Assembly: GCF_001194135.2 (NCBI RefSeq)
Contig: NC_068982.1
Coordinates: forward strand, 24,247,848 to 24,303,961
Direction: 5' to 3'
Length of the DNA: 56,114 bases
Origin: Octopus bimaculoides
Taxonomy: Eukaryota
Position 1 is the first letter of the stretch. The number at the start of each line of letters is the position of its first letter. The notes under the pieces were generated by a model, which was not told the DNA's origin, searched no databases, and saw nothing but the letters and a program-made list of their open reading frames with translations. Positions 1-53,175 of the stretch are shown here, piece by piece. A program made the translations under genes and the position numbers.

Positions 1-1255
1 ACTCTCCTGCTGTAAATCTCATCCTCATGTTGTCGTAGCAGGACATGAGTATTCGTTGAACATCTTTTGGAATCCAAAAGAAGTCCATCGCTGCTCTGAT
101 TACCGCGTGTGGAACAGATCCATATGCATTGGCAAGATCTAGCCAAACAACGTGCAGGTTTTTCTTCAGTTGTTTTGCACAGGTGATAGCTTCCCAGATG
201 GCAAATGCGTGTTCTATGCACCCAGGGATTCCGGGGATTCCTGCTTTTTGGATTGCTTCATTAACGTACCCGTTATGCTGTACGAATCTTATGATTCGTC
301 TAGCAATGATTCCAAACATGATTCTCCCGTCAGTATTTAATAATGAAGTTGGTCTAAACTGTCCTAGTGTTTTTGCATCTTTCTCTTTAGGTAAATAGAT
401 ACCTTCAGCTATACACCATCGCTCCGCTACGTCTTTCTTCTTCCACATTTCTCTTATCAATGCAAATAACTGTAAACGCAATTTTGGGCAATACTTGTAA
501 ACCTTGTAGCTCACACCGTCGTTCCCTGGTGAACATTTTGCTCTTGCTTTTCTTATGAATTCCTCTATTTCTTTCCGTTTGATGTCGCTCAAATCGAAAA
601 GTACCCTTGGTTCAGGTGGTTTCTTCAGTCCGAGCATTTCTGGGAGTACTTTATTTCTGTCAGAGTCGCTGTATGTCTCTTTAAGATGTGGTTCGAGCTT
701 TTCATTCGTGCAATCCAATTTTCCGCTTTTACTTTCAGTAAATAAATGTTTCGCATATTGATAGGGATTGTTCAAAAAGCTACGATAGTTCTTTTCTCTC
801 TCCTTTCTTCTGTTCTTCCTTCTTTCTTTTCTCAGTAGTTCTCGATGCCTCTTTTTTATCTCTTCATATAGCTGCTTTAACCCTTCTCTTTCCTCCTCCT
901 TTGCATCCCTTCATCTGGTTCTGAGTTTTTTCTTCTCTTCTCGAATCTTTGCAATCCGTCTTTCTCTCTTCGATGGTCCACTCTTTGCCGGTGATTCTAC
1001 CTTCCATGTTGTTTCCAGTCCAAATATTTTCTCTCCTTCCTGGTAGATTGTATAAGCCAGGTTCTCGAGCTTTTGTTCGTCGTCGCCTTTGAATTTGGTG
1101 GTCATTCTTGATACCTCGTTGTCGATGTTTTTATAATTTTCTGCGTCACTTGCTTTCGGCCACTTAATCTTTGTCTTCTTCACGCCTATCACTGTTTGTG
1201 ACTGTTCTAATTCAACTGTGGAATGTCCCATACAAGAAACAACAGGATTAGGCAA
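1..1255 (-). mobile_element. HERO-type (R2 superfamily) non-LTR retrotransposon ORF, N-terminal region plus RT domains; apparently 5'-truncated, one premature stop, continues beyond window start
   Basis: Manual translation gives one frame from 1255 to 2 with a single TGA (911-913): KIKWPKASD...LRTR*RDAKEEEREGLKQL...FLNNPYQYAKHLF...SPGNDGVSYKVYKYCPKL...WCIAEGIYLPKEKDAKTLGQFRPTSLLNTDG...QKAGIPGIPGCIEH...VVWLDLANAYGSVPH. These are RT motifs of RLE-type LINEs, closest to HERO by recall. Confidence 0.9.
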
Positions 1256-1850
1256 TGTACAACATCATATATCAAACACTTACTATGCAGCAAAAACCAA
1301 TGCATATCACATGCAGAGGCAGATACATTTGTGCACGTTAATGCAGTGAGAGCACGCAATAATAGTAATAATGCTAAAATAAGTGTGATAGTTTCTAACT
1401 TTATCTGATATATGAAATACTGGTGAGAACGATTGACGTTAGAACTTAAATACTTTGTTTCATTGAGCTCATTATGAAGGAAAGCAAAGGCAGCTTTCAC
1501 GGGATTTAAATTAAGAGCGTAAATTCAGGAAATAAATCATAGTAAAATCATTTCCCGATGCTCACTCCCATTAAATTCAATCAATAACAGCAGCATTAAT
1601 AATAATGATAAAAACATAATATTTTTTTCTTTCTATCAGTAATGCAACAGAAGAACAACATAAGGCTTGTACATCTATCTAGGAATACGATAAATATGAA
1701 ATGGAAAATAATATACAGATACAATATCGAAATTAGTGATGTTTTTTTCGGATATTAGCATGGAACTAAATAGCAATTTGTATTTAGTGTGGACGAAAAA
1801 TGTAACTATTAAAAGTGAAACAAATATGTACAAGTATGTGTTTGTGCATG

Positions 1851-4070: not shown

Positions 4071-4929
4071 AAATACATATAAATTAAATAATTTGCATAT
4101 ATGTATATATATATAATATATATGCATAATACTTATGCATATTATGTATAAAAATATATGTATATATATATATGTATGAGTATGTGTGCGTGTGTGTGCA
4201 TGTATATATATGTGTGTGTGTGTGTGACTGAGTGCGCGCGCTTGTGTTTGTGAGGGTGTGTGCATATGTGTGGGCACGTCTGTGCTTGTCTGTACGTGTG
4301 TGTGTGTTATATTTGGATAAGAACCTATGGCACTTGATTTTTTAGTATGACACACAATACGTTAGATTTACATCTGGTACCTGATTGCATTCACTATAAC
4401 CACACATACATACAAGTGTATCTCTTTGTATGACTGTGTGGGTGTGCTGTGGTCATATGTTTTTCGAATTTTTTCTTTGCTATGAAATTCTAGTGAATGT
4501 GACCGAAAATCACTGCTAATTGACGCTATTCATCAATGATGAATGTGATAAATATGATTTGGTGAATAAATGAATATGCCGTGGGTGTATTTCGAAAATG
4601 GTGGATAACCCTTAATAAAAAGCAATCTTATCAAAAGAGCTTTTTAAATCTGGCTCTAGCTTACGAAGGATATATGTTGCGTCCTTCATCATGAATCGCT
4701 CAAATTCAAATATATTTATGCCGATGTTTATACGTATACACTCCTATCATCTAGCTATCGAACACAGCAATCTATCATGTTCTCTCAATATTCCGCAACA
4801 TGAAAATTCCATATCTTAAAATATTATAATGTTGCGATTATGTGTAATTAAATAATATACCAATTATTGGTAATATTTCTACTTACGTTTGGTGATGTTA
4901 TAAATGAATAAAGTGGTGCAGCAATACTT

Positions 4930-14035: not shown

Positions 14036-15385
14036 AATACAGGCCACTGGCTCTCATGGCTTCTGATCTTGACTGATTGGATGTGTTATTATGGTCATTG
14101 TTTTGTTTTGGTATAAAAGAGGGTCTACAGAAAATATTCTGCTCAATAACACAAATGTACTTATTAGTTGTTTCACTGTAAACAGTTGAGCATGCCATCC
14201 GAAAACTTAAAATTTAGGCTAAAAAGAATTAATATTAAAAGAAGAAATAAGATGATAAGTTTGAGAGAATAAAGGAGTCGCCTAAAACCATTAGATAAAC
14301 CATCTTAGAGTACTGAAAATGACACATCACAGAAATGACAGTTTATGAGTAATGGTTAAATTTACCATCTGAAGGTTTGTAAACCGTCCTTTTAAGAAAA
14401 TTCTAAGTGAAAACGATAACTCTTGCAAATAATACATTTATCAAAGATCTTGTTAAAGTGTAGAATCTAAGCTGGTAAAGGAGGAATTTAACATGCGTGC
14501 CGACATAGCTCGAGTGACAAATTTAGAAATCCTAGGAGAGTAAAAGACATAACATGTCAATCATAGAAGTTACAGGTACATAAAATAAAACAAGTTAACG
14601 TAAAATATTAATATAATAATACAAGTGTATAAAAACTGACACAGACAGAGTAGAATATAGAAAATGTGGATATAACATATGTCTGTACACAAAAAAGAGA
14701 AATTATGCCACTATACACACAAAAAACACTGTTAGATAAGAGATATAAAAAAAATATCAAATGAAAGTAATATAAAAATATATGAAAAATATACCTATAA
14801 CATATAACATATTACTACATAAATAAAACAGAAAATAAGAGAAAAATATCAGAAAAAAGTATCTAATTATGAATTGAGATATCAACTCATAACATATGTG
14901 TCTGGGATTGTAAATATGAGTGTATGGGAATTGATAATTAACCATATATAGTAAAAAAAATATCAATAGTTAACTAGCGGGCGGAGGTTCGAACACGGAG
15001 CAGATAACATTAGATCACGTGTGGTAATGTTTCACAGAATTTATAAAACGTGTTCTCTGATTATTTGAAAATGTAACAATGCTAAAACTATATTGTATAA
15101 TATATTTTTAGATGATAAATTACCACACAACACACACACACACACATACTCATATATATATATATATATATATATATAAGAGAATGTTTAATGGAGACAA
15201 TACTCCGTGTATAGTATAACTGTTTCTTTTTGTGCTCGTTTATGAGCAAAGTAGTAATACAAATCCAAGGATCAGTGTTATCATTACTCTGCCTCTCTCT
15301 CTTTATATATATATATATATATATACATATGTATAGGTACGTATGTATGTAGAATTACAGCTACGAGTCCAGACTACTATTCCCA

Positions 15386-17150: not shown

Positions 17151-17740
17151 GCAATACAATGAAATACGTGAGTAACATTAAGAACAGGTGATGTGATTAT
17201 TGCTAAAATAGAAAATATAAATATATCCTCTGTTCTAGGTTGTAATATAAAGAAAATTGCGCGGAATATAGTTATGATTACTAAATTTTAGTTCGGCACC
17301 AACGAACACACAGATGCACGCTCTCTCCCCACCTCTCTCTCTCTCTCTCACACACACACAAATATACACACATACATCCACACCCACATACACGCACACA
17401 CAAACACACACGCACATATATATTCATATATTCTCGGCACATAATAGGATATATCGGCGTTGCTACACCATAAGTGTCTTACATACACACACAAACAAAA
17501 ACACACAGCTATACGTTATTTTTCACTTTCACCATTCATCTCTCTATATATATATACAGACACACATCTGTATACATGTATATGTGTGCGTGTCTGAACT
17601 CCTGCTTGTGTATGTATATATAAATCACAGAAGATAGAGATACCTTCAAGTCAAACATGAGGTTAAAGAATTTAAGTTAATAAAATACGTGTTAAACACA
17701 GTATCGAAACCTTATTTAAGTGTAAGTGGCCACGAGTATG

Positions 17741-18590
17741 ATTATTCTATTCTACTCTAAGCACAAGGCCGGAAATTTTTGGGGAGGGAGGCAGTCGATT
17801 GGATCGACCCCAGCACTTACTTTATCGACTCCGAAAGGATGAAAGGCAAAGTCGACCTCGGCACAATTTGAACTCAGAACGTAAAGACAGAGGAAATACC
17901 GCTAAGCATTTCACCCACCGTGCTAACATTTCTTATTTCTTTATTGTCCACAAGGGGCTAAACATAGAGGGGACAAACACGGACAGACGAAGGGATTAAG
18001 TCAATTATATCAACCGAGTGTGTAACTGGTACTTATTTAATCGACCCCGAAAGGATGAAAAGTAAAGTCGACCTCGGCGGAATTTGAACTCAGAACGTAA
18101 CGGCAGACGAAATACCGCTAAGCATTTCGCCCGGCGTGCTAACGTTTCTGCCAACTCGTCGCCTTGAGTGTGCTAACGTTTCTTATTTCTTCACTGCCCA
18201 CAAGAGGCTACACACAGAGGGGACAAACAATGAGAGAGAAACGGATTAAGTCGATTATATCGAACCAGTGCATAACTGGTACTTAATTTATTGACTCCCA
18301 AAGGGATGAAAGACAAAGTCGACCTGGGCGGAATGTGAACTCAGAACGTAACGGCTGACGAAATACCTATTTCGTTATTGCTAAACATAGAGGGAACAAA
18401 CAAGAATAGACGAACGTATTAAGTTAATTACATCGACCCCAGTGCGTAACTGGTACTTAATTTATCGACCCCCGAAAGGATGAAAAGTAAAGTCGACCTC
18501 GGCGGAATTTGAACTCAGAACGTAACGGCTGACGAAATAACGCTAAGCATTTCGCCCGGCGTGCTAACGTTTCTGCCAGCTCGCCGCCTT
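17741..18590 (-). mobile_element. Head-to-tail array of four SINE family 2 copies (17741-17933, 17934-18166, 18184-18367, 18368-18590)
   Basis: Each unit carries GTTCTGAGTTCAAATTCCGCCGAGGTCGACTTT.C.TTTCATCCTTTCGGGGTCGAT (or a close variant). Full heads GGCGGCGAGCTGGCAGAAACGTTAGC in copies 2 and 4. Confidence 0.95.
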
Positions 18591-18907
18591 GTGAGTATAG
18601 TTGTTAATGTGTGCTTATGTATCTCTTTACCTTGATTTAAACGTATGAGTTTGTGCGCGTTTCTCTGTGCGTCTGTCTAAGTGTTAAAACCTTCCAATAC
18701 AGCGAAACTCAAGTGTAAATCTTCCAGTTTAAAAACTTATTATCGCACCCGAGGAGTCTTCTATGCGCTGTGTGTTGCATCTGTTGTTATTGCATCGGTC
18801 CACGCCCACAATGGAGCAGTGCATCTTGAAGATGAAAAATTCTTCTAGTAATATAAATTTTTTTGTTGGTACATTCCATCCTTTCTTTTTATAATTAACA
18901 TACATAT

Positions 18908-19109: not shown

Positions 19110-20000
19110 NNNNNNNNNNNNNNNNNNNNNNNNNNNNNNNNNNNNNNNNNNNNNNNNNNNNNNNNNNNNNNNNNNNNNNNNNNNNNNNNNNNNNNNNNNN
19201 NNNNNNNNNNNNNNNNNNNNNNNNNNNNNNNNNNNNNNNNNNNNNNNNNNNNNNNNNNNNNNNNNNNNNNNNNNNNNNNNNNNNNNNNNNNNNNNNNNNN
19301 NNNNNNNNNNNNNNNNNNNNNNNNNNNNNNNNNNNNNNNNNNNNNNNNNNNNNNNNNNNNNNNNNNNNNNNNNNNNNNNNNNNNNNNNNNNNNNNNNNNN
19401 NNNNNNNNNNNNNNNNNNNNNNNNNNNNNNNNNNNNNNNNNNNNNNNNNNNNNNNNNNNNNNNNNNNNNNNNNNNNNNNNNNNNNNNNNNNNNNNNNNNN
19501 NNNNNNNNNNNNNNNNNNNNNNNNNNNNNNNNNNNNNNNNNNNNNNNNNNNNNNNNNNNNNNNNNNNNNNNNNNNNNNNNNNNNNNNNNNNNNNNNNNNN
19601 NNNNNNNNNNNNNNNNNNNNNNNNNNNNNNNNNNNNNNNNNNNNNNNNNNNNNNNNNNNNNNNNNNNNNNNNNNNNNNNNNNNNNNNNNNNNNNNNNNNN
19701 NNNNNNNNNNNNNNNNNNNNNNNNNNNNNNNNNNNNNNNNNNNNNNNNNNNNNNNNNNNNNNNNNNNNNNNNNNNNNNNNNNNNNNNNNNNNNNNNNNNN
19801 NNNNNNNNNNNNNNNNNNNNNNNNNNNNNNNNNNNNNNNNNNNNNNNNNNNNNNNNNNNNNNNNNNNNNNNNNNNNNNNNNNNNNNNNNNNNNNNNNNNN
19901 NNNNNNNNNNNNNNNNNNNNNNNNNNNNNNNNNNNNNNNNNNNNNNNNNNNNNNNNNNNNNNNNNNNNNNNNNNNNNNNNNNNNNNNNNNNNNTATATAT

Positions 20001-20040
<40 letters not shown>

Positions 20041-25500: not shown

Positions 25501-26375
25501 TGAAGCCAATTTTATTATAAAAACCACTTTGGATGACGAGGCAAACGTTGTTGATACATCCTAAAATACTGACATAAAACATTCTTCGTTAGAAGATTTC
25601 TCTATAATTTTCATGGCAATACATTAACAAGTATCCCTTTTTCGCAGTTGATTCAAGCAATGAAAACATGTCTAAATCGAAGCATACGCAAATCAATGAA
25701 TATTTGGGGCAGCAATGAATCTAATTTCAGAGAGCATCATTGTCAAACAGAAAAGAAAAAAACAAACAAACAAATAAAATTTGCATCCATAATTTTATAG
25801 AATAAAACGATTCACACGATAAATTTAACTCGCATATGTCACTGCAAAAACTAGAAAACAATATTCATATTTCAAAAATCTAAATACACTGTCGATTCCA
25901 ATTTCTGCAAAAACAAATCATGCGACCATTAAATGATTTAATCTTCTATAAATTGAAAGTAGAAATGAGTAGTAAATAATGAAATTCTGTGCGCACGAAT
26001 GCTATGTATATAAATAGAACTAAATATATGTATACAACCAGATTATACAGGTATTAAAATACTCATTAGTTAATGCCTGTAACTACACGTATGCGTGATA
26101 GTATTGTATTTATTACGTATGTAAGGAAGTGCGCAAGCGTCATTATGCGTCTATATCCTGAATGCTTTGTTTCCGATATTTCATATCTAAATGCAACAAA
26201 CTTGCCTTTAGTTAGAATGCTTTAAACTGGGTGGTAATAAAAATACGTAAACCTATATAAGGGTTTATTAAGTGAGTATATGAATGGACTGGGAATATAT
26301 AATATTGCTTAAAATGTATGTGTCGCCTCCATCCCTCCCACATCTAACTCATCATCTTCATCCACGCTTCCGTCT

Positions 26376-27440
26376 GTGGTTATCATTCCTCCTTATCTTC
26401 CCCTATCTGGGGTGGAGCGCTCTCTTCTCAGTAAGGATCTGCGCTTCATCACCCTCACTCTATCAGGAACGAGTTTAAGACCCGTGCTGACATTCATAGT
26501 TTTGTGCGCCAGGTTTGACCAGTTCCAAGTAGTTGATCATTGTGCAAGCATCTGCCAACCTGTTGTGGACGGGTTCAAATTTTACAGGTGTCCCCACAAT
26601 TTTTACACCTCGCTGGTCGAACTCTCGGCCTACCGACAAGGGCGGCGCTATGCTGGTGTAACGTGCAGACGTTTACAAGGCAGAAGCTCTCCGCCAACTT
26701 CAGGACATCTCCTTCTATAACCCTCTGCCTTGCAACCTCACGCCTAACTGCCAACAGACTGTGTCTTCCACTATTCATAACCTCATTTCCTTCTCCCGTC
26801 ACCCTCCCACCGCTTCCAACCTCTTTGTTCACACTCCAACATCACCACTATTTACTTACTTCTTAAAATGCACAAGCTCAACAACCTTGGCCGCCCTATT
26901 TCTCCGTTTGCAACTGCCCTGCGGAAATGATCTCCAAATACCTCAACCATGTCCTTGCTCCTCCTTGTGGCTTCCCTCCCCTCCGACATCCATGATGCTA
27001 ATCATGTTCTCCGTCTCTTTAAGTCTTTCTGCTACCCTTCTGGTCTCTCTAAATTCCCGTTCACTATTGATATCAAGAATTTATATACGGTGATAGCACA
27101 CAACGAAGGACTTTTTCCTCTGAAAGACTTTCTGGACTTTCGACCTGACTCCCAACCTGACATCTTCACATATTTTCGTCTGGTTGAATTTGTTCTCTCA
27201 TTCGACGGCTTTTCCTCTGCCGGGGAATTTTACTAACAAACTTCAGAAGTGGCCGTGGGAACGAGAATGGGCCCCAAATACGCGAAGCTGTTCGTTGGCT
27301 ACGCTGAGACCCAAACATTCTCACATTTCACTTGTCCCATTCCCGAACTATACGGTCGTTATATCGGTGACTGTATCGGCGCAACCTCACAACCCTCGCG
27401 AATAACTAGACTCCTTCGTCTCTTTTATCCAGTCCTTCCA
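26376..27440 (+). mobile_element. Penelope-like element (Neptune-type) reverse transcriptase pseudogene
   Basis: LSGVERSLLSKDL; PTDKGGAMLV*RADVYKAEALRQL; IYLLLKMHKLNNLGRP; FTIDIKNLYTVI; VAVGTRMGPKYAKLFVG; YGRYIGD (YIDD lost). Stops and frameshifts present. Confidence 0.9.
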
Positions 27441-27534
27441 TCTTGCCCTCTAATTCTCCTGCGCTAGATAGTCCCACCATGTAGGACTACCAATCTTTAT
27501 AAAGTAAACCATACCCGTTTGACAGAATGACGTC

Positions 27535-27840
27535 TCAGAATAGTTGTAGTGTATGTTCTAAAAACCCACATATTAACTGCAAAAACAAAAGCACTGTATA
27601 CCAGATTAAGTGCAAGAAGGGACTTGCGCGAGTATCCCAGAATCATATATTGGTGAAACTTCTAGGAGCATCAATGGCCCCTTAGGGAGGCTTAAGTCTG
27701 ACATCTTATCTACATATCCCACTGATGCAATGCTGAGACAAGTCACTGAAGCTGTATGTATACAGGAATACAAACTCACGCTCAACCTTACATCCGAACG
27801 GGGTAACACCCACATTCCGTTCGGGAGTACCCATCTATAG
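27535..27840 (+). mobile_element. GIY-YIG endonuclease remnant of a Penelope-like element
   Basis: CSVC...CKNKSTVYQIKC, then after a frameshift YIGETSRS...DAMLRQVTEAV.I...LN. Confidence 0.85.
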
Positions 27841-28009
27841 TCACCCCTTTCTTTCAATTGCATGTAGAAATCCAAACATATATGTTGAAATGTATGATAG
27901 TGACATACATATATGCAGTTATATGTAATATTATGAGTGTACATAGATTAATACTATATACTTATGTGTAGATGCATGTGAATTTTAGGGTTCGCACGCA
28001 CACACAAAC

Positions 28010-49960: not shown

Positions 49961-51952
49961 AACGACGACTATGACCACGATGAAGAAAGAAGCAATTTCG
50001 AAGAGGAAGGAGAAATATCAAATAACACACATCAATTTTGTTTCTACGTTTTCGTCTGTCCAAAGAAAGCCATAAGAGGAAGAGGAATGGGGAGAAAACT
50101 GCAAAATTACAAAAGTAGATTAGCAGAGCCAGCACCAATATCAATACATTTACTAGACACAAACAACACCACCAACAACCTAATTGCTCTGTTCACGTCA
50201 TTATATGTGAGAAGTAGTAAATAAAGCAAATGAAGAACACCAGAAAAAATAACAACAACACGTGAACAAATCTAAGCAAGATAGATTGAAAGAGAAACGC
50301 GTTTCGTCAAACGTCGAAAACAATTATGTTTTGTAGCGACTCTGATGTTGACACAAAACTGTTGAGTGGTTCCAGTTTTAATGATGATTATGTCACTGCT
50401 AAACGACTATGTTCCGGAAACCATTATTCTTTATGGATTCTTTCAGAATAAGTAGAAAATAAAGGAAAAAATTGAAGAACATAAACATAAATTAGCCAGA
50501 AATAAAGAATGATCGAACTGAACACGAAAACAACAAGGTATATTTGCGGAAATTCTCTTGTGCATCAAAGCTGTGTAAACTTTAGCAATAATGTTTTACT
50601 AAATAAACAATACATATTACAAAATGGCTTATTCTGACAATCTATCTTGAATAATGAGAGAGGAAGAAAAGAAAACTGTGCTGAAGATTCTAATGTTGTA
50701 ATTAAGGCGTCAATACAGAAAACGCAGGAACTACAAGTGAGATAAATTAGTAGATAATAACTATTCCATACCTATTAAAATACCTCCTTCATTCACCACC
50801 CAATTCAGAAAAATTCTCCTAGGAACTTTAACGTTGAAGTTTCAAAATTTAATATAAAAAGAGGATAATTTCTAGTCTTTATAGTTTTTCCAACGATGAT
50901 TATTATTATTAAAAAAAAGCATGATTTGAATTTAAAATCTAATGCTTTTATTTGAAAGGCCTCCTATAAAAAATATATCATAAATGTGCTTTTACAATGG
51001 CGTGGGCAAGCTGGGACAATTTAATAATCTAAGATGGTTAAATTACTTCATTTTTAATTTGAGAAAAACTACATAGCATATTTTCATGCGTTTAGATTGC
51101 AAGAAATACACATTAAATATAATACTTTGGATATATTTACAAACTCAAGGACGTTATGTCAGATGTAAAAAATGATCTGTTATACGGTGCAAGTACACTG
51201 AAATCCTGATAACACGTGTACCGATGTCTGTTAAAATATCAGCGACATTATCTCTTATTGTAGATCTCTACGATTGTTAGAAAACATAGGAAGTATAAAG
51301 TAAACACGAAAGAGCTATTCCTAGAGTTACACCAAGGAAAATTTCCCGAAACAAATTTATGAAAAATATTTTAACTAGATCATTCAGTCAAGCTTTTCAG
51401 CGCGATAATGCATAATATTACTGATTTTGTTATACCATTAATAAGATGATTTTAGGCGAGCCCCTTATCCAATTCGTTCTTAAATAATTCCTTCTTTTTA
51501 CGGAAATGGAAGGGTGTCAGTTGCTACTTATTTGACTGCTATTTCTAGCAGTTTCAAGCGATTTGGTTGAGTCTTCCATGGTGTCCTGCATATTTTAATT
51601 TTGGACACAATATACCTAGTTTAATTCATGTGCAAAAAGATTATATCTAATCACTTTAGAATATGAAGACTGGGGAAAACATATAAGTGCGAACACGGCA
51701 AAGTAAAAAGGATTATGCATCAGTTGAGATCAGGAAGCGCTTGCTTAAAGTTGATAATCCTACACGATATGTTTACCCTATATGTTTAAGAGAATAGAAA
51801 GGTTATAAACCTGCACTATCGTATCCCTAATACTTCGCTGCAATATAATAAAATATTAATTATATATAGAAAATATTATTCTTTCTACTCGTGATTTAAA
51901 ACAGTATTATTTTCCGTAACGTCAGTAAAACATTTATAGAATCGTATTTCTT

Positions 51953-52030
<78 letters not shown>

Positions 52031-52257
52031 GCGAGCTGGCAGAAACGTTAGCACGCCGGGCGAAATGCTTAGCGGTATTTTGTCTTTTGTTACGTTCTGA
52101 GTTCAAATTCCGCCGAGGTCGACTTTGCCTTTCATCCTTTCGGGGTCGATTAAATAAGTACCAGTTACGCACTGGGGTCGATATAAGCGACTTAATCCAT
52201 TTGTCTGTCCTTGTTTGTCCCCTCTGTGTGTAGCCCCTTGTGGGTAGTAAAGAAATA
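52031..52257 (+). mobile_element. SINE family 2 (tail type 2), near full length, inserted in a (CA)n tract
   Basis: GCGAGCTGGCAGAAACGTTAGC...GAGTTCAAATTCC...GTGGGTAGTAAAGAAATA with (CA)n on both sides. Confidence 0.95.
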
Positions 52258-52559
52258 ACACACACATACACACACATACACACACACACAACCACGTACA
52301 CACACACACAACCACTCACACACATACACACACATACACACATACACACACACATATACACACACACACCAATACATATCTGGGTATCTCCCGCAAGTTT
52401 TGATATATGAGTTGAAGAAAGAAAGAAAGAAAGAAACTCCATGTAAGCATGAATGCATGAATGCAATTTCAATTCACGTATAGATTTGTTTATGAAGTCG
52501 CAATGGGTATGTTTATTACTTTGATTTTACTTGGGATTGGACAAGTGCATCTATTAATT

Positions 52560-52870
52560 GTGTACTATATTTCTTCTATTGTTCTTCTTCACCTCAAATT
52601 GCTTGGATCCATCGTGACATATTTTACGCCATGCAGATCGATCTAGGCAATGACTTTTCCAAGATATCTGGGTTACCTGTAGAAATGGCAGTGATTGCTT
52701 CAACTTATATTTATACCCAAGGAGAGGTCTTCTTCTGTCTTCTACTTGTTGGTCATACAGAGTAATTTTCGGAATGCTGTTATTTTCCATTCGAGCAACA
52801 TTTCCTGCCCATCTGCACAGAATTTTCCTTAGCACACATTGACTAATGGAAATGTCATACGCCTGCAGTA
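52560..52870 (-). mobile_element. RTE-clade LINE, ORF2 C-terminus
   Basis: CRWAGNVARMENNSIPKITLY...YKYKLKQSL...DRSAWRKI matches the RTE RWAGHV.RM...PK...DR..WR pattern. Confidence 0.85.
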
Positions 52871-53175
52871 TCGAATCCCTCATACTTGGCCTCCTAATAA
52901 AATTATAAGCATAATAGTATCCATGCATAATAGAAGGTTGGCAACAGTGATATCACCTAGTCATTGTTAAGAGGTATTTTCTGTTGCTACTGGAACCAAA
53001 CAGGGATGTGCTTTGGTCTTTGTACTTTTTCCATACTCTTTTCATTGATGCGCCAACAGGCTTTAGGGATTACCTTGAATGTATATATGTATATACGGAT
53101 ACACATTTAGATATAGGTATATAAATATAGATATAGATATACAGATACACACACACGCACAGGACACAACACGCA

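Follow-up and report, generated by a model that had tools for sequence, protein, structure and literature searches.

The window analysed here, a stretch of 56,114 nucleotides from Octopus bimaculoides (contig NC_068982.1), carries four SINE units on its minus strand between 18602 and 17732, arranged head-to-tail and all in one orientation. Positions within units refer to our own consensus, which was built from these few copies. Unit A (minus strand, 18590 to 18368) is a full-length member of a young family, with an intact head (AAGGCGGCGAGCTGGCAGAAACG...), the tail end ...AATAACGAAATA and, in alignment to a solo copy elsewhere in the window, an 11-nt deletion before the tail. Unit B (minus strand, 18367 to 18184) belongs to the same family and has the tail ...GAAGAAATA. 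It lacks head positions 1-49 and begins with GGTATTTCG, consensus position 50. Unit B is followed by a head fragment (AGAAACGTTAGCAC, consensus 17-30, minus strand, 18183 to 18170) and by the four filler bases ACTC (minus strand, 18169-18166), which form the 5' junction of unit C and are absent from the consensus of the other copies. Unit C (minus strand, 18165 to 17934) is a full-length young-family copy with a 14-bp duplication on both sides. The last unit, D (minus strand, 17933 to 17741), lacks head positions 1-16 and starts with AGAAATG, consensus position 17. It represents an older family, which we call D-type: head and core are those of the young family, the 3' body and tail (TAGAATAGAATAAT) are different, and identity to the other units is 75%. 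Within the array the units measure 223, 184, 250 and 193 nt, with no constant period.

Three junctions in the array join a tail to an internal position of a head. At 18368/18367 (A|B), the family tail (...GAAATA) abuts head position 50 with zero extra bases. At 18184/18183 the tail of B is joined to head position 17 (AGAAAYGTTAGCAC), and at 17934/17933 the tail of C is followed by AGAAATGTTAGCAC..., the start of unit D, again at head position 17. The sequence GAAATAAGAAAYGTTAGCAC occurs twice in the window, against 0 occurrences expected from shuffles. The only feature that the two head sites have in common is T[AG]GC^[AG]. On reading the sequence beside A, B, C and the young-type copy of the Octopus vulgaris pair described below, we saw no remnant of an upstream head (positions 1-16 or 1-49).

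The occurrence of AGAAAYGTTAGCAC on both flanks of unit C is the 14-bp target-site duplication of C. Its downstream copy consists of the first 14 nt of D (17920-17933), which differ from 18170-18183 by one CpG transition. The duplication could be as long as 22 bp (AAGAAATAAGAAAYGTTAGCAC), since the last eight tail bases are the same in B and C. The two position-17 junctions are thus not independent, which leaves two independent direct junctions in the window: A|B (position 50) and B|D (position 17). As for 17934/17933, it represents either a second hit on the bond already used by B or the B|D junction copied within the longer duplication. The clean 14-bp duplication of head sequence around C proves that at least one true retroposition took place into this context.

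These results bear on an earlier note on the same DNA, which had reported the tail end GAAATA fused to the head at 17933/4, 18183/4 and 18367/8. All three coordinates are confirmed. The note had treated the two position-17 junctions as separate events, and this count does not stand, because AGAAAYGTTAGCAC is the duplication of C; there are two independent sites, with one event each. The 17-nt head fragment that it described before a full copy is present and is really 14 nt of head plus filler. Its view of one family throughout applies to A, B and C and fails for D, with its different 3' body and tail. Target-site duplications had been proposed there as a check on insertion, and one of 14 bp surrounds unit C.

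A second, weaker duplication may enclose the entire array. Its 5' copy (AACTATACTCAC, minus strand, 18591..18602) lies immediately upstream of unit A, and its 3' copy (AATCATACTCGT, minus strand, 17732..17743) overlaps the last bases of the D tail. The two copies, AACTATACTCAC and AATCATACTCGT, share 8 identities and differ by 4 transitions in 12 nt, a likeness that could be due to chance. Units A (ATACTCAC, 18591-18598) and C (ACACTC, 18166-18171) resemble each other in the bases that immediately precede AAGG, which may reflect a 5' extension shared from a common source gene, or chance. Such a shared extension, if real, would weaken the argument from the outer duplication.

The 3' end of the young family can be read from a solo copy on the plus strand at 52031-52257, which starts at consensus position 7 and ends ...AAAGAAATA. 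This end fixes the tail end of the family, and a copy from O. vulgaris agrees. The young-family 3' end is ...CCTTGTGGGNANTAAAGAAATA, and the tail is also written ...CCCCTTGTGGGCAATAAAGAAATA. The solo copy lies within a long (CA)n tract (window 51950-52400), with CA repeats on either side that make its own duplication unreadable; its site might reflect a preference for microsatellites. The elements are SINEs in that they are short, non-coding, dispersed and multicopy; ~160 kb of DNA from three Octopus species contains 21 related copies, each 180-240 nt long. A further target-site duplication, of 14 bp (AACTTGATTT[AG]AGT), flanks the copy at 15183-15350 of locus L007 (GCA_001194135.2), a locus in which 8.6 kb of 23 kb is N. 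Five 3' junctions of the young family are available, in part from a window that was pre-selected for its junctions. Head position 50 accounts for two of them, position 17 for one or two, and (CA)n for one.

Several comparisons indicate how the units are related and which are younger. Identities within the array are 84% for A-B, 84% for B-C and 92% for A-C, and identities to the unlinked solo copy are 88%, 87% and 91% for A, B and C. The array units are therefore no closer to each other than to the solo copy, which rules out a recent local tandem duplication, the outcome of a check that the earlier note had set against its own reading. Consensus CpGs are intact at 19/20 sites in A, 16/20 in C, 8/13 in B and 9/15 in D (Fisher p = 0.025 for A versus B and 0.019 for A+C versus B+D), age figures that are indicative only, as the CpG consensus was derived from the same few copies. 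Private substitutions in 172 shared columns number 7 in A, 5 in C, 6 in the solo copy and 12 in B. At the divergence of A, the probability of at least 4 differences in the outer 12-nt duplication is 0.019; this duplication, with its 4 transitions, thus agrees with an old initial event, not with a young composite. Taken together, the CpG counts, the private substitutions and the outer duplication indicate that of two joined units the upstream one is the younger, and that its tail abuts an internal position in the head of an older unit. Insertion into a resident tail would be expected to give the reverse order.

One other substitution bears on the A|B junction. The only derived base exclusive to A and B is T61 to A (GTCAGCC), which falls in segment 50-63. 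An insertion of A into B would duplicate this segment, and we therefore count the shared base in favor of nesting. A point against nesting is that private substitutions are absent from the first 49 bases of A, which would be somewhat surprising in old sequence.

Other octopus DNA was obtained by way of the protocadherin genes. Part of an O. bimaculoides protocadherin was rebuilt from the supplement of PMC6339937 and used as bait for octopus proteins, and the loci of these proteins were then fetched. Protocadherin clusters proved SINE-poor, and a single locus was both SINE-rich and informative, L008 on O. vulgaris chromosome OX597827.1 (21.7 kb, no N, from a gap-free chromosome assembly). In L008 a young-type unit (minus strand, 5135 to 4926) ends in the tail ...GGTAAAGAAATA, and GGTATTTTGTCTGC, again position 50, follows it without a gap. 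The junction reads GAAATA|GGTATTTTG, and the downstream unit is D-type, starts at position 50, has a D-type tail and ends in (ATT)n. This pair differs from the window pair in its flanks, in the subfamily of the upstream unit and in the family of the downstream unit, and both of its units are far more decayed. By intact CpGs (6/17 versus 3/11, p = 1), its two units look equally old. The surrounding 1.1 kb (L008 4100-5250) holds six SINE copies of several families, and at L008 19575-20010 two full-length copies stand in tandem with AATAAT[TA][AG]CAT before, between and after them, the pattern of two insertions at one target site. The older families have (ATT)n-type tails.

This L008 copy is the sole young-family copy in loci picked without bias. 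For one unbiased young copy, we put the chance of combining a SINE head as its site, the same orientation and either of the two pre-named positions at about 5e-4 (2.3% x 2%). Among the 21 copies in ~160 kb, clear loss of more than 15 nt of the head is seen in only three, B, D and the downstream L008 unit, and each of these adjoins a young-family tail; two old copies were unscorable. A candidate solo copy starting at position 50 (L015 5596-5790) was rejected because alignment reveals decayed head sequence upstream. There are thus three independent direct junctions in all, two of them from a window that was selected because of its junctions. The upstream partner is of the young family every time, and the downstream partner is D-type twice and young once. 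Junctions spread along the head had been named in the earlier note as an outcome that would count against fixed sites. They are not spread, and the position-50 junction (GAAATA|GGTATTT) recurs at an independent O. vulgaris locus with a different downstream family. The claim of fixed sites survives this first replication, on very small numbers.

The head of these elements resembles a tRNA in a limited way. Its tRNA-like features are a B-box-like sequence (GAGTTCAAATTCC), TRGC motifs and two conserved hairpins, and nothing more. ARAGORN found 0 tRNA genes in the head, and Rfam gave no tRNA match at E<=10, so that the tRNA-like head of the earlier note stands on the B-box-like sequence and the hairpins and is not recognized as a tRNA by either program. 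Hairpin 1 has a stem of positions 11-16/23-28 and a loop of positions 17-22 (AGAAAC). Hairpin 2 has a stem of positions 33-45/50-62 and a loop of positions 46-49 (UAGC). In 13 copies drawn from several families, the paired share of cells is 85-92%, versus 33-59% in slid controls. The hairpins show no covariation beyond shuffles in these 13 copies. The helices require G-U pairs and are therefore present in the sense RNA only. Both junction sites are the exact loop edges of the two hairpins. Stalling of reverse transcriptase at the hairpins was considered as a source of the junctions and dismissed, since on reaching either site the enzyme would have the stem melted behind it.

Based on these comparisons, we tentatively favor, at a little under even chances, the idea that young copies integrate into the heads of resident SINEs at preferred positions and that the 5' side is resolved in register. 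With the same reserve, we read the array as a nested pile of retropositions and not as a duplication. The order of events, the in-register resolution and the choice of site at the DNA level are all inferred. In the proposed history, an old full-length D-type SINE would have inserted first, and its 12-nt duplication would still flank the entire array. The younger family, which shares the head, would then have entered resident heads by target-primed reverse transcription in constant orientation, with the first-strand nick at either of two preferred bonds, 16^17 (cTGGC^AGAAAC) or 49^50 (tTAGC^GGTATT). A staggered cut would leave a 12-14-nt overhang of head sequence complementary to the new cDNA, and the second strand could start in register. 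The outcome would be a complete unit followed by the old unit, from which the first 16 or 49 bases would be missing, and the duplication would not show. Unit C would have arrived on the border between the B tail and the D head, where there is no head upstream, and would thus have formed an ordinary 5' junction, with filler and a visible 14-bp duplication.

Resolution in register would account for the missing head remnants, for an old outer duplication that touches the first base of A and for the ordinary junction of C. The nested history also accounts for the constant orientation of the units and for the T61 to A change common to A and B. Repeated insertion into older heads, as postulated in the earlier note, agrees with a carrier that is always young and with an interrupted unit that is older in two of three cases. 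Its weak part is the 5' side: with no upstream head remnant at three direct junctions, resolution in register must be assumed each time. Other points also count against it. The nick contexts are unlike those deduced for older families (TT^CA, TT^GA), the upstream half of the supposed site (CTGGC) had already been exchanged for the B tail when C inserted, and the position of both sites at loop edges hints at a determinant at the level of RNA and not DNA.

What might direct the choice of site is suggested in part by the cut strands, which read CT^GCCA, CC^GCTA and, for the top-strand cut of C, AC^GCCG, a hint of a Y^GCY nick preference. Candidates are an endonuclease preference, base pairing with SINE RNA that read-through has extended at its 3' end and, at site 17, the 5-nt microhomology AGAAA between tail and head. 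There is no microhomology at the position-50 junction, and position 17 shares AGAAA only, whose use would delete the observed TA; microhomology was thus rejected as a common explanation of the junctions. Also rejected was the idea that the tail is a diverged copy of head positions 22-43 and the junction a recombination product (p = 0.6 for the similarity).

Several other origins of the tail-to-head junctions have to be weighed against nested insertion. Template switching by non-LTR reverse transcriptases is established, for example in the end-to-end jumps of R2 and in U6-L1 chimeras. In the octopus, SINE RNA might be cut in the head loops after C16 and C49, one loop D-loop-like and the other anticodon-loop-like, and reverse transcriptase might copy the 3' fragment, which would retain the tail recognized by the LINE enzyme, run off and jump to the 3' end of another SINE RNA. 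A single integration would then give a full unit followed by a unit from 50 or from 17, with no internal duplication. We consider this rather unlikely, yet it is the chief rival and a serious one. It fits junctions at the loop edges of conserved hairpins whose helices exist in sense RNA only, the C that precedes both cuts, direct junctions without duplication, filler or upstream head remnant, the one duplication around the A...D composite and the apparently equal age of the two L008 units. However, run-off without a jump should be common, and 0 of the 21 copies are solo copies starting at 17 or 50. The acceptor is always of the young family and the donor mostly older, an asymmetry without a reason. 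A and C look younger than B and D, and the outer duplication looks older than A. Pol III transcripts are expected to have variable 3' flanks, whereas all four junctions fall exactly after GAAATA. Finally, building the array in this way would take a minimum of two jumps, and C would have to be inserted separately. A further reference on template switching is 10.1101/2025.02.02.635956.

An improbable reading is that one or a few dimers arose once and were then copied whole, so that the shared junction was inherited. Only two junction types are observed, dimeric and trimeric SINE families are common (PMC4758252), and the T4 run from GGTATTTTG just behind the tail (in L008 and in the solo-type head) makes read-through products conceivable. 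Such masters are difficult to reconcile with the partners of the position-50 junction, since the downstream unit is young-type with a young tail in the window and D-type with a D-type tail and (ATT)n in O. vulgaris, and the upstream units come from different subfamilies. In addition, the tail of B is itself joined to yet another unit, and a dimer copied whole should precede a duplication and not another truncated head. It is still less probable that new, partly 5'-truncated copies landed in or near A/T-rich tails of resident copies, comparable to the insertion of Alu into A-rich tails, which would make the downstream unit the newcomer and its start the truncation point. At the direct junctions the downstream B and D look older than the units upstream of them, the same truncation points in two species would lack an explanation, the position-50 junction has no microhomology, and nothing is left of the upstream tail beyond the downstream unit. 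Tail-directed insertion may well describe unit C and the many full-length tandem pairs of L008. Pairs with a full-length downstream unit are frequent there (4119-4470; 19575-20010; (ATT)n followed by the copy from 4703 to 4520), and a nick within the B tail would suit C, where the duplication may reach 22 bp (AAGAAATAAGAAAYGTTAGCAC) and the nick would read TT^CA, as in older families. Least probable of all, by a small margin, is local rearrangement (tandem duplication, unequal crossing-over or gene conversion) or an artefact of a short-read, gap-rich assembly. The window does contain 11 N-gaps, one of them about 500 bp away (19110-19993), and unequal recombination of neighbouring copies yields in-register structures. 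On the other hand, identities within the array (84-92%) are not above those to the solo copy (87-91%), the units differ in family and length, C has a proper duplication and filler bases, and the same junction is found in the gap-free O. vulgaris chromosome assembly.

A broader form of nested insertion would have a SINE subfamily home into Pol III heads at two fixed bonds, in register and recurrently over a long time, and so build the head-to-tail SINE stacks of octopus. The specificity could come from a restriction-like LINE endonuclease or from RNA pairing, as in R2. The O. vulgaris pair, which is much more decayed than the window pair, is the basis for long-lasting recurrence. We regard homing in this full form as possible and doubtful. 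The sequence-specific LINE endonuclease proposed in the earlier note found no support: no LINE with this tail, and no non-SINE match to its last 67 nt, turned up in the window and the fetched loci (~160 kb), and the two sites share T[AG]GC^[AG] only. The safe-harbour role that the note ascribed to the heads is speculation.

Reverse transcriptases like those of the R2 superfamily are present in the window. The window starts inside a LINE (2-1264, minus strand) that has a 303-aa open frame with an RVT_1 match (E=6.5e-8). The best relatives of its reverse-transcriptase ORF (window 2-910) are 63% identical and come from ENA assemblies without the SINE; named relatives include R2-type elements. In one assembly (L005 1-16320, ERZ25072724), this type of LINE forms a head-to-tail tandem array with a period of ~3.6 kb. 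The most active LINEs reported in O. vulgaris are Dong-R4 (PMC13282606). Two other parts of the window resemble retroelements by eye, a broken frame at 26300-27900 (plus strand) with a reverse-transcriptase-like stretch, FTIDIKNLY...YA.LF, and a broken frame at 52557-52952 (minus strand), beside the solo SINE, with a LINE C-terminal stretch, ...RWAGNVARM.... Neither fragment gave a match in Pfam. Between 3472 and 54967 the window has 11 runs of N (5372 N in total), and (TA)n, (CA)n or (GA)n microsatellites flank almost every one.

Searches outside the octopus genomes returned little. ORFs read from the SINE gave no candidates in a protein database, in a search that used the antisense translation. 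In metagenome and prokaryotic genome collections there was no octopus SINE. The most conserved 20-mer of the SINE, TTACGTTCTGAGTTCAAATT, was matched by three contigs of JGI metagenome Ga0126343 and by one Oscillospiraceae MAG (L001-L004), and these four matches share no other part of the element. The conserved 20-mer had no match in viral contigs. Long contigs of ENA record ERZ21867824 (L010, L013 and L014), which is catalogued among metagenome assemblies, carry tandem protocadherin genes about 50% identical to those of octopus and no octopus SINE families; this record is presumably another cephalopod genome.

Known elements provide several parallels. Human Alu inserts into Alu in the sense orientation at a single-nucleotide hotspot (Levy, Schwartz & Ast 2010, PMC2836564). 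As in the octopus, young elements are nested in older kin, and the Alu hotspot is off the canonical endonuclease motif. In contrast to the octopus sites, the Alu hotspot directly follows the A-rich linker and is attributed to the poly(A) tail, and both parts of the target are visible around the insert. The octopus has two sites, which are within the Pol III head and not A-rich, and no upstream part of the target can be seen there. Target-specific non-LTR elements include R2, R4/Dong, Utopia (U2 snRNA genes) and Tx1-type elements (tRNA, 5S and snRNA genes) (PMC4640811, PMC4494074). Like these, the octopus SINE may use one defined bond of a multicopy, small-RNA-type sequence in fixed orientation. 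Its target would be its own relatives and not a host gene, though, at least one copy is elsewhere (the solo copy in (CA)n), and its specificity is putative.

Chimeras made by template switching, such as U6-L1, resemble the octopus pairs in that a complete 5' unit with an exact 3' end precedes a 5'-truncated unit without internal duplication. Truncation points are variable in the known chimeras, whereas in the octopus they are fixed and the units are apparently of different age. Yeast Ty3 and the Dictyostelium elements TRE5-A and TRE3 integrate at fixed distances from the A- and B-box promoters of Pol III genes. They land upstream or downstream of the gene through contacts with TFIIIB and TFIIIC. 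The octopus bonds, unlike these, are inside the transcribed head. The birth of SINEs by template switching is treated in 10.1101/081950. We conclude that the tail-to-head junctions in octopus are most likely a variant of the nested-insertion hotspots known from human Alu.

SINEs are the largest repeat class in octopus genomes (PMC8967140) and make up ~11-12% of them (PMC13282606). On either reading of the junctions the scope of the effect is modest, and a close human analogue is known. If template jumping after RNA cleavage in tRNA-like loops produced the junctions instead, these would be a record of tRNA-fragment-type processing of SINE RNA in the germ line. If landing is indeed directed to heads, it would give a tractable handle on the partner LINE. 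It would also mean that age and copy-number estimates based on RepeatMasker fragments are biased, because in-register chimeras pass for intact copies. A new copy would take over a proven promoter and its 5' flank, and insertion at position 50 would add a T-run terminator (GGTATTT[T/C]G) behind the tail. Head-directed landing would explain the dense clusters of SINEs in the same orientation, and the octopus would have a natural self-targeting retrotransposon that limits harm to host genes.
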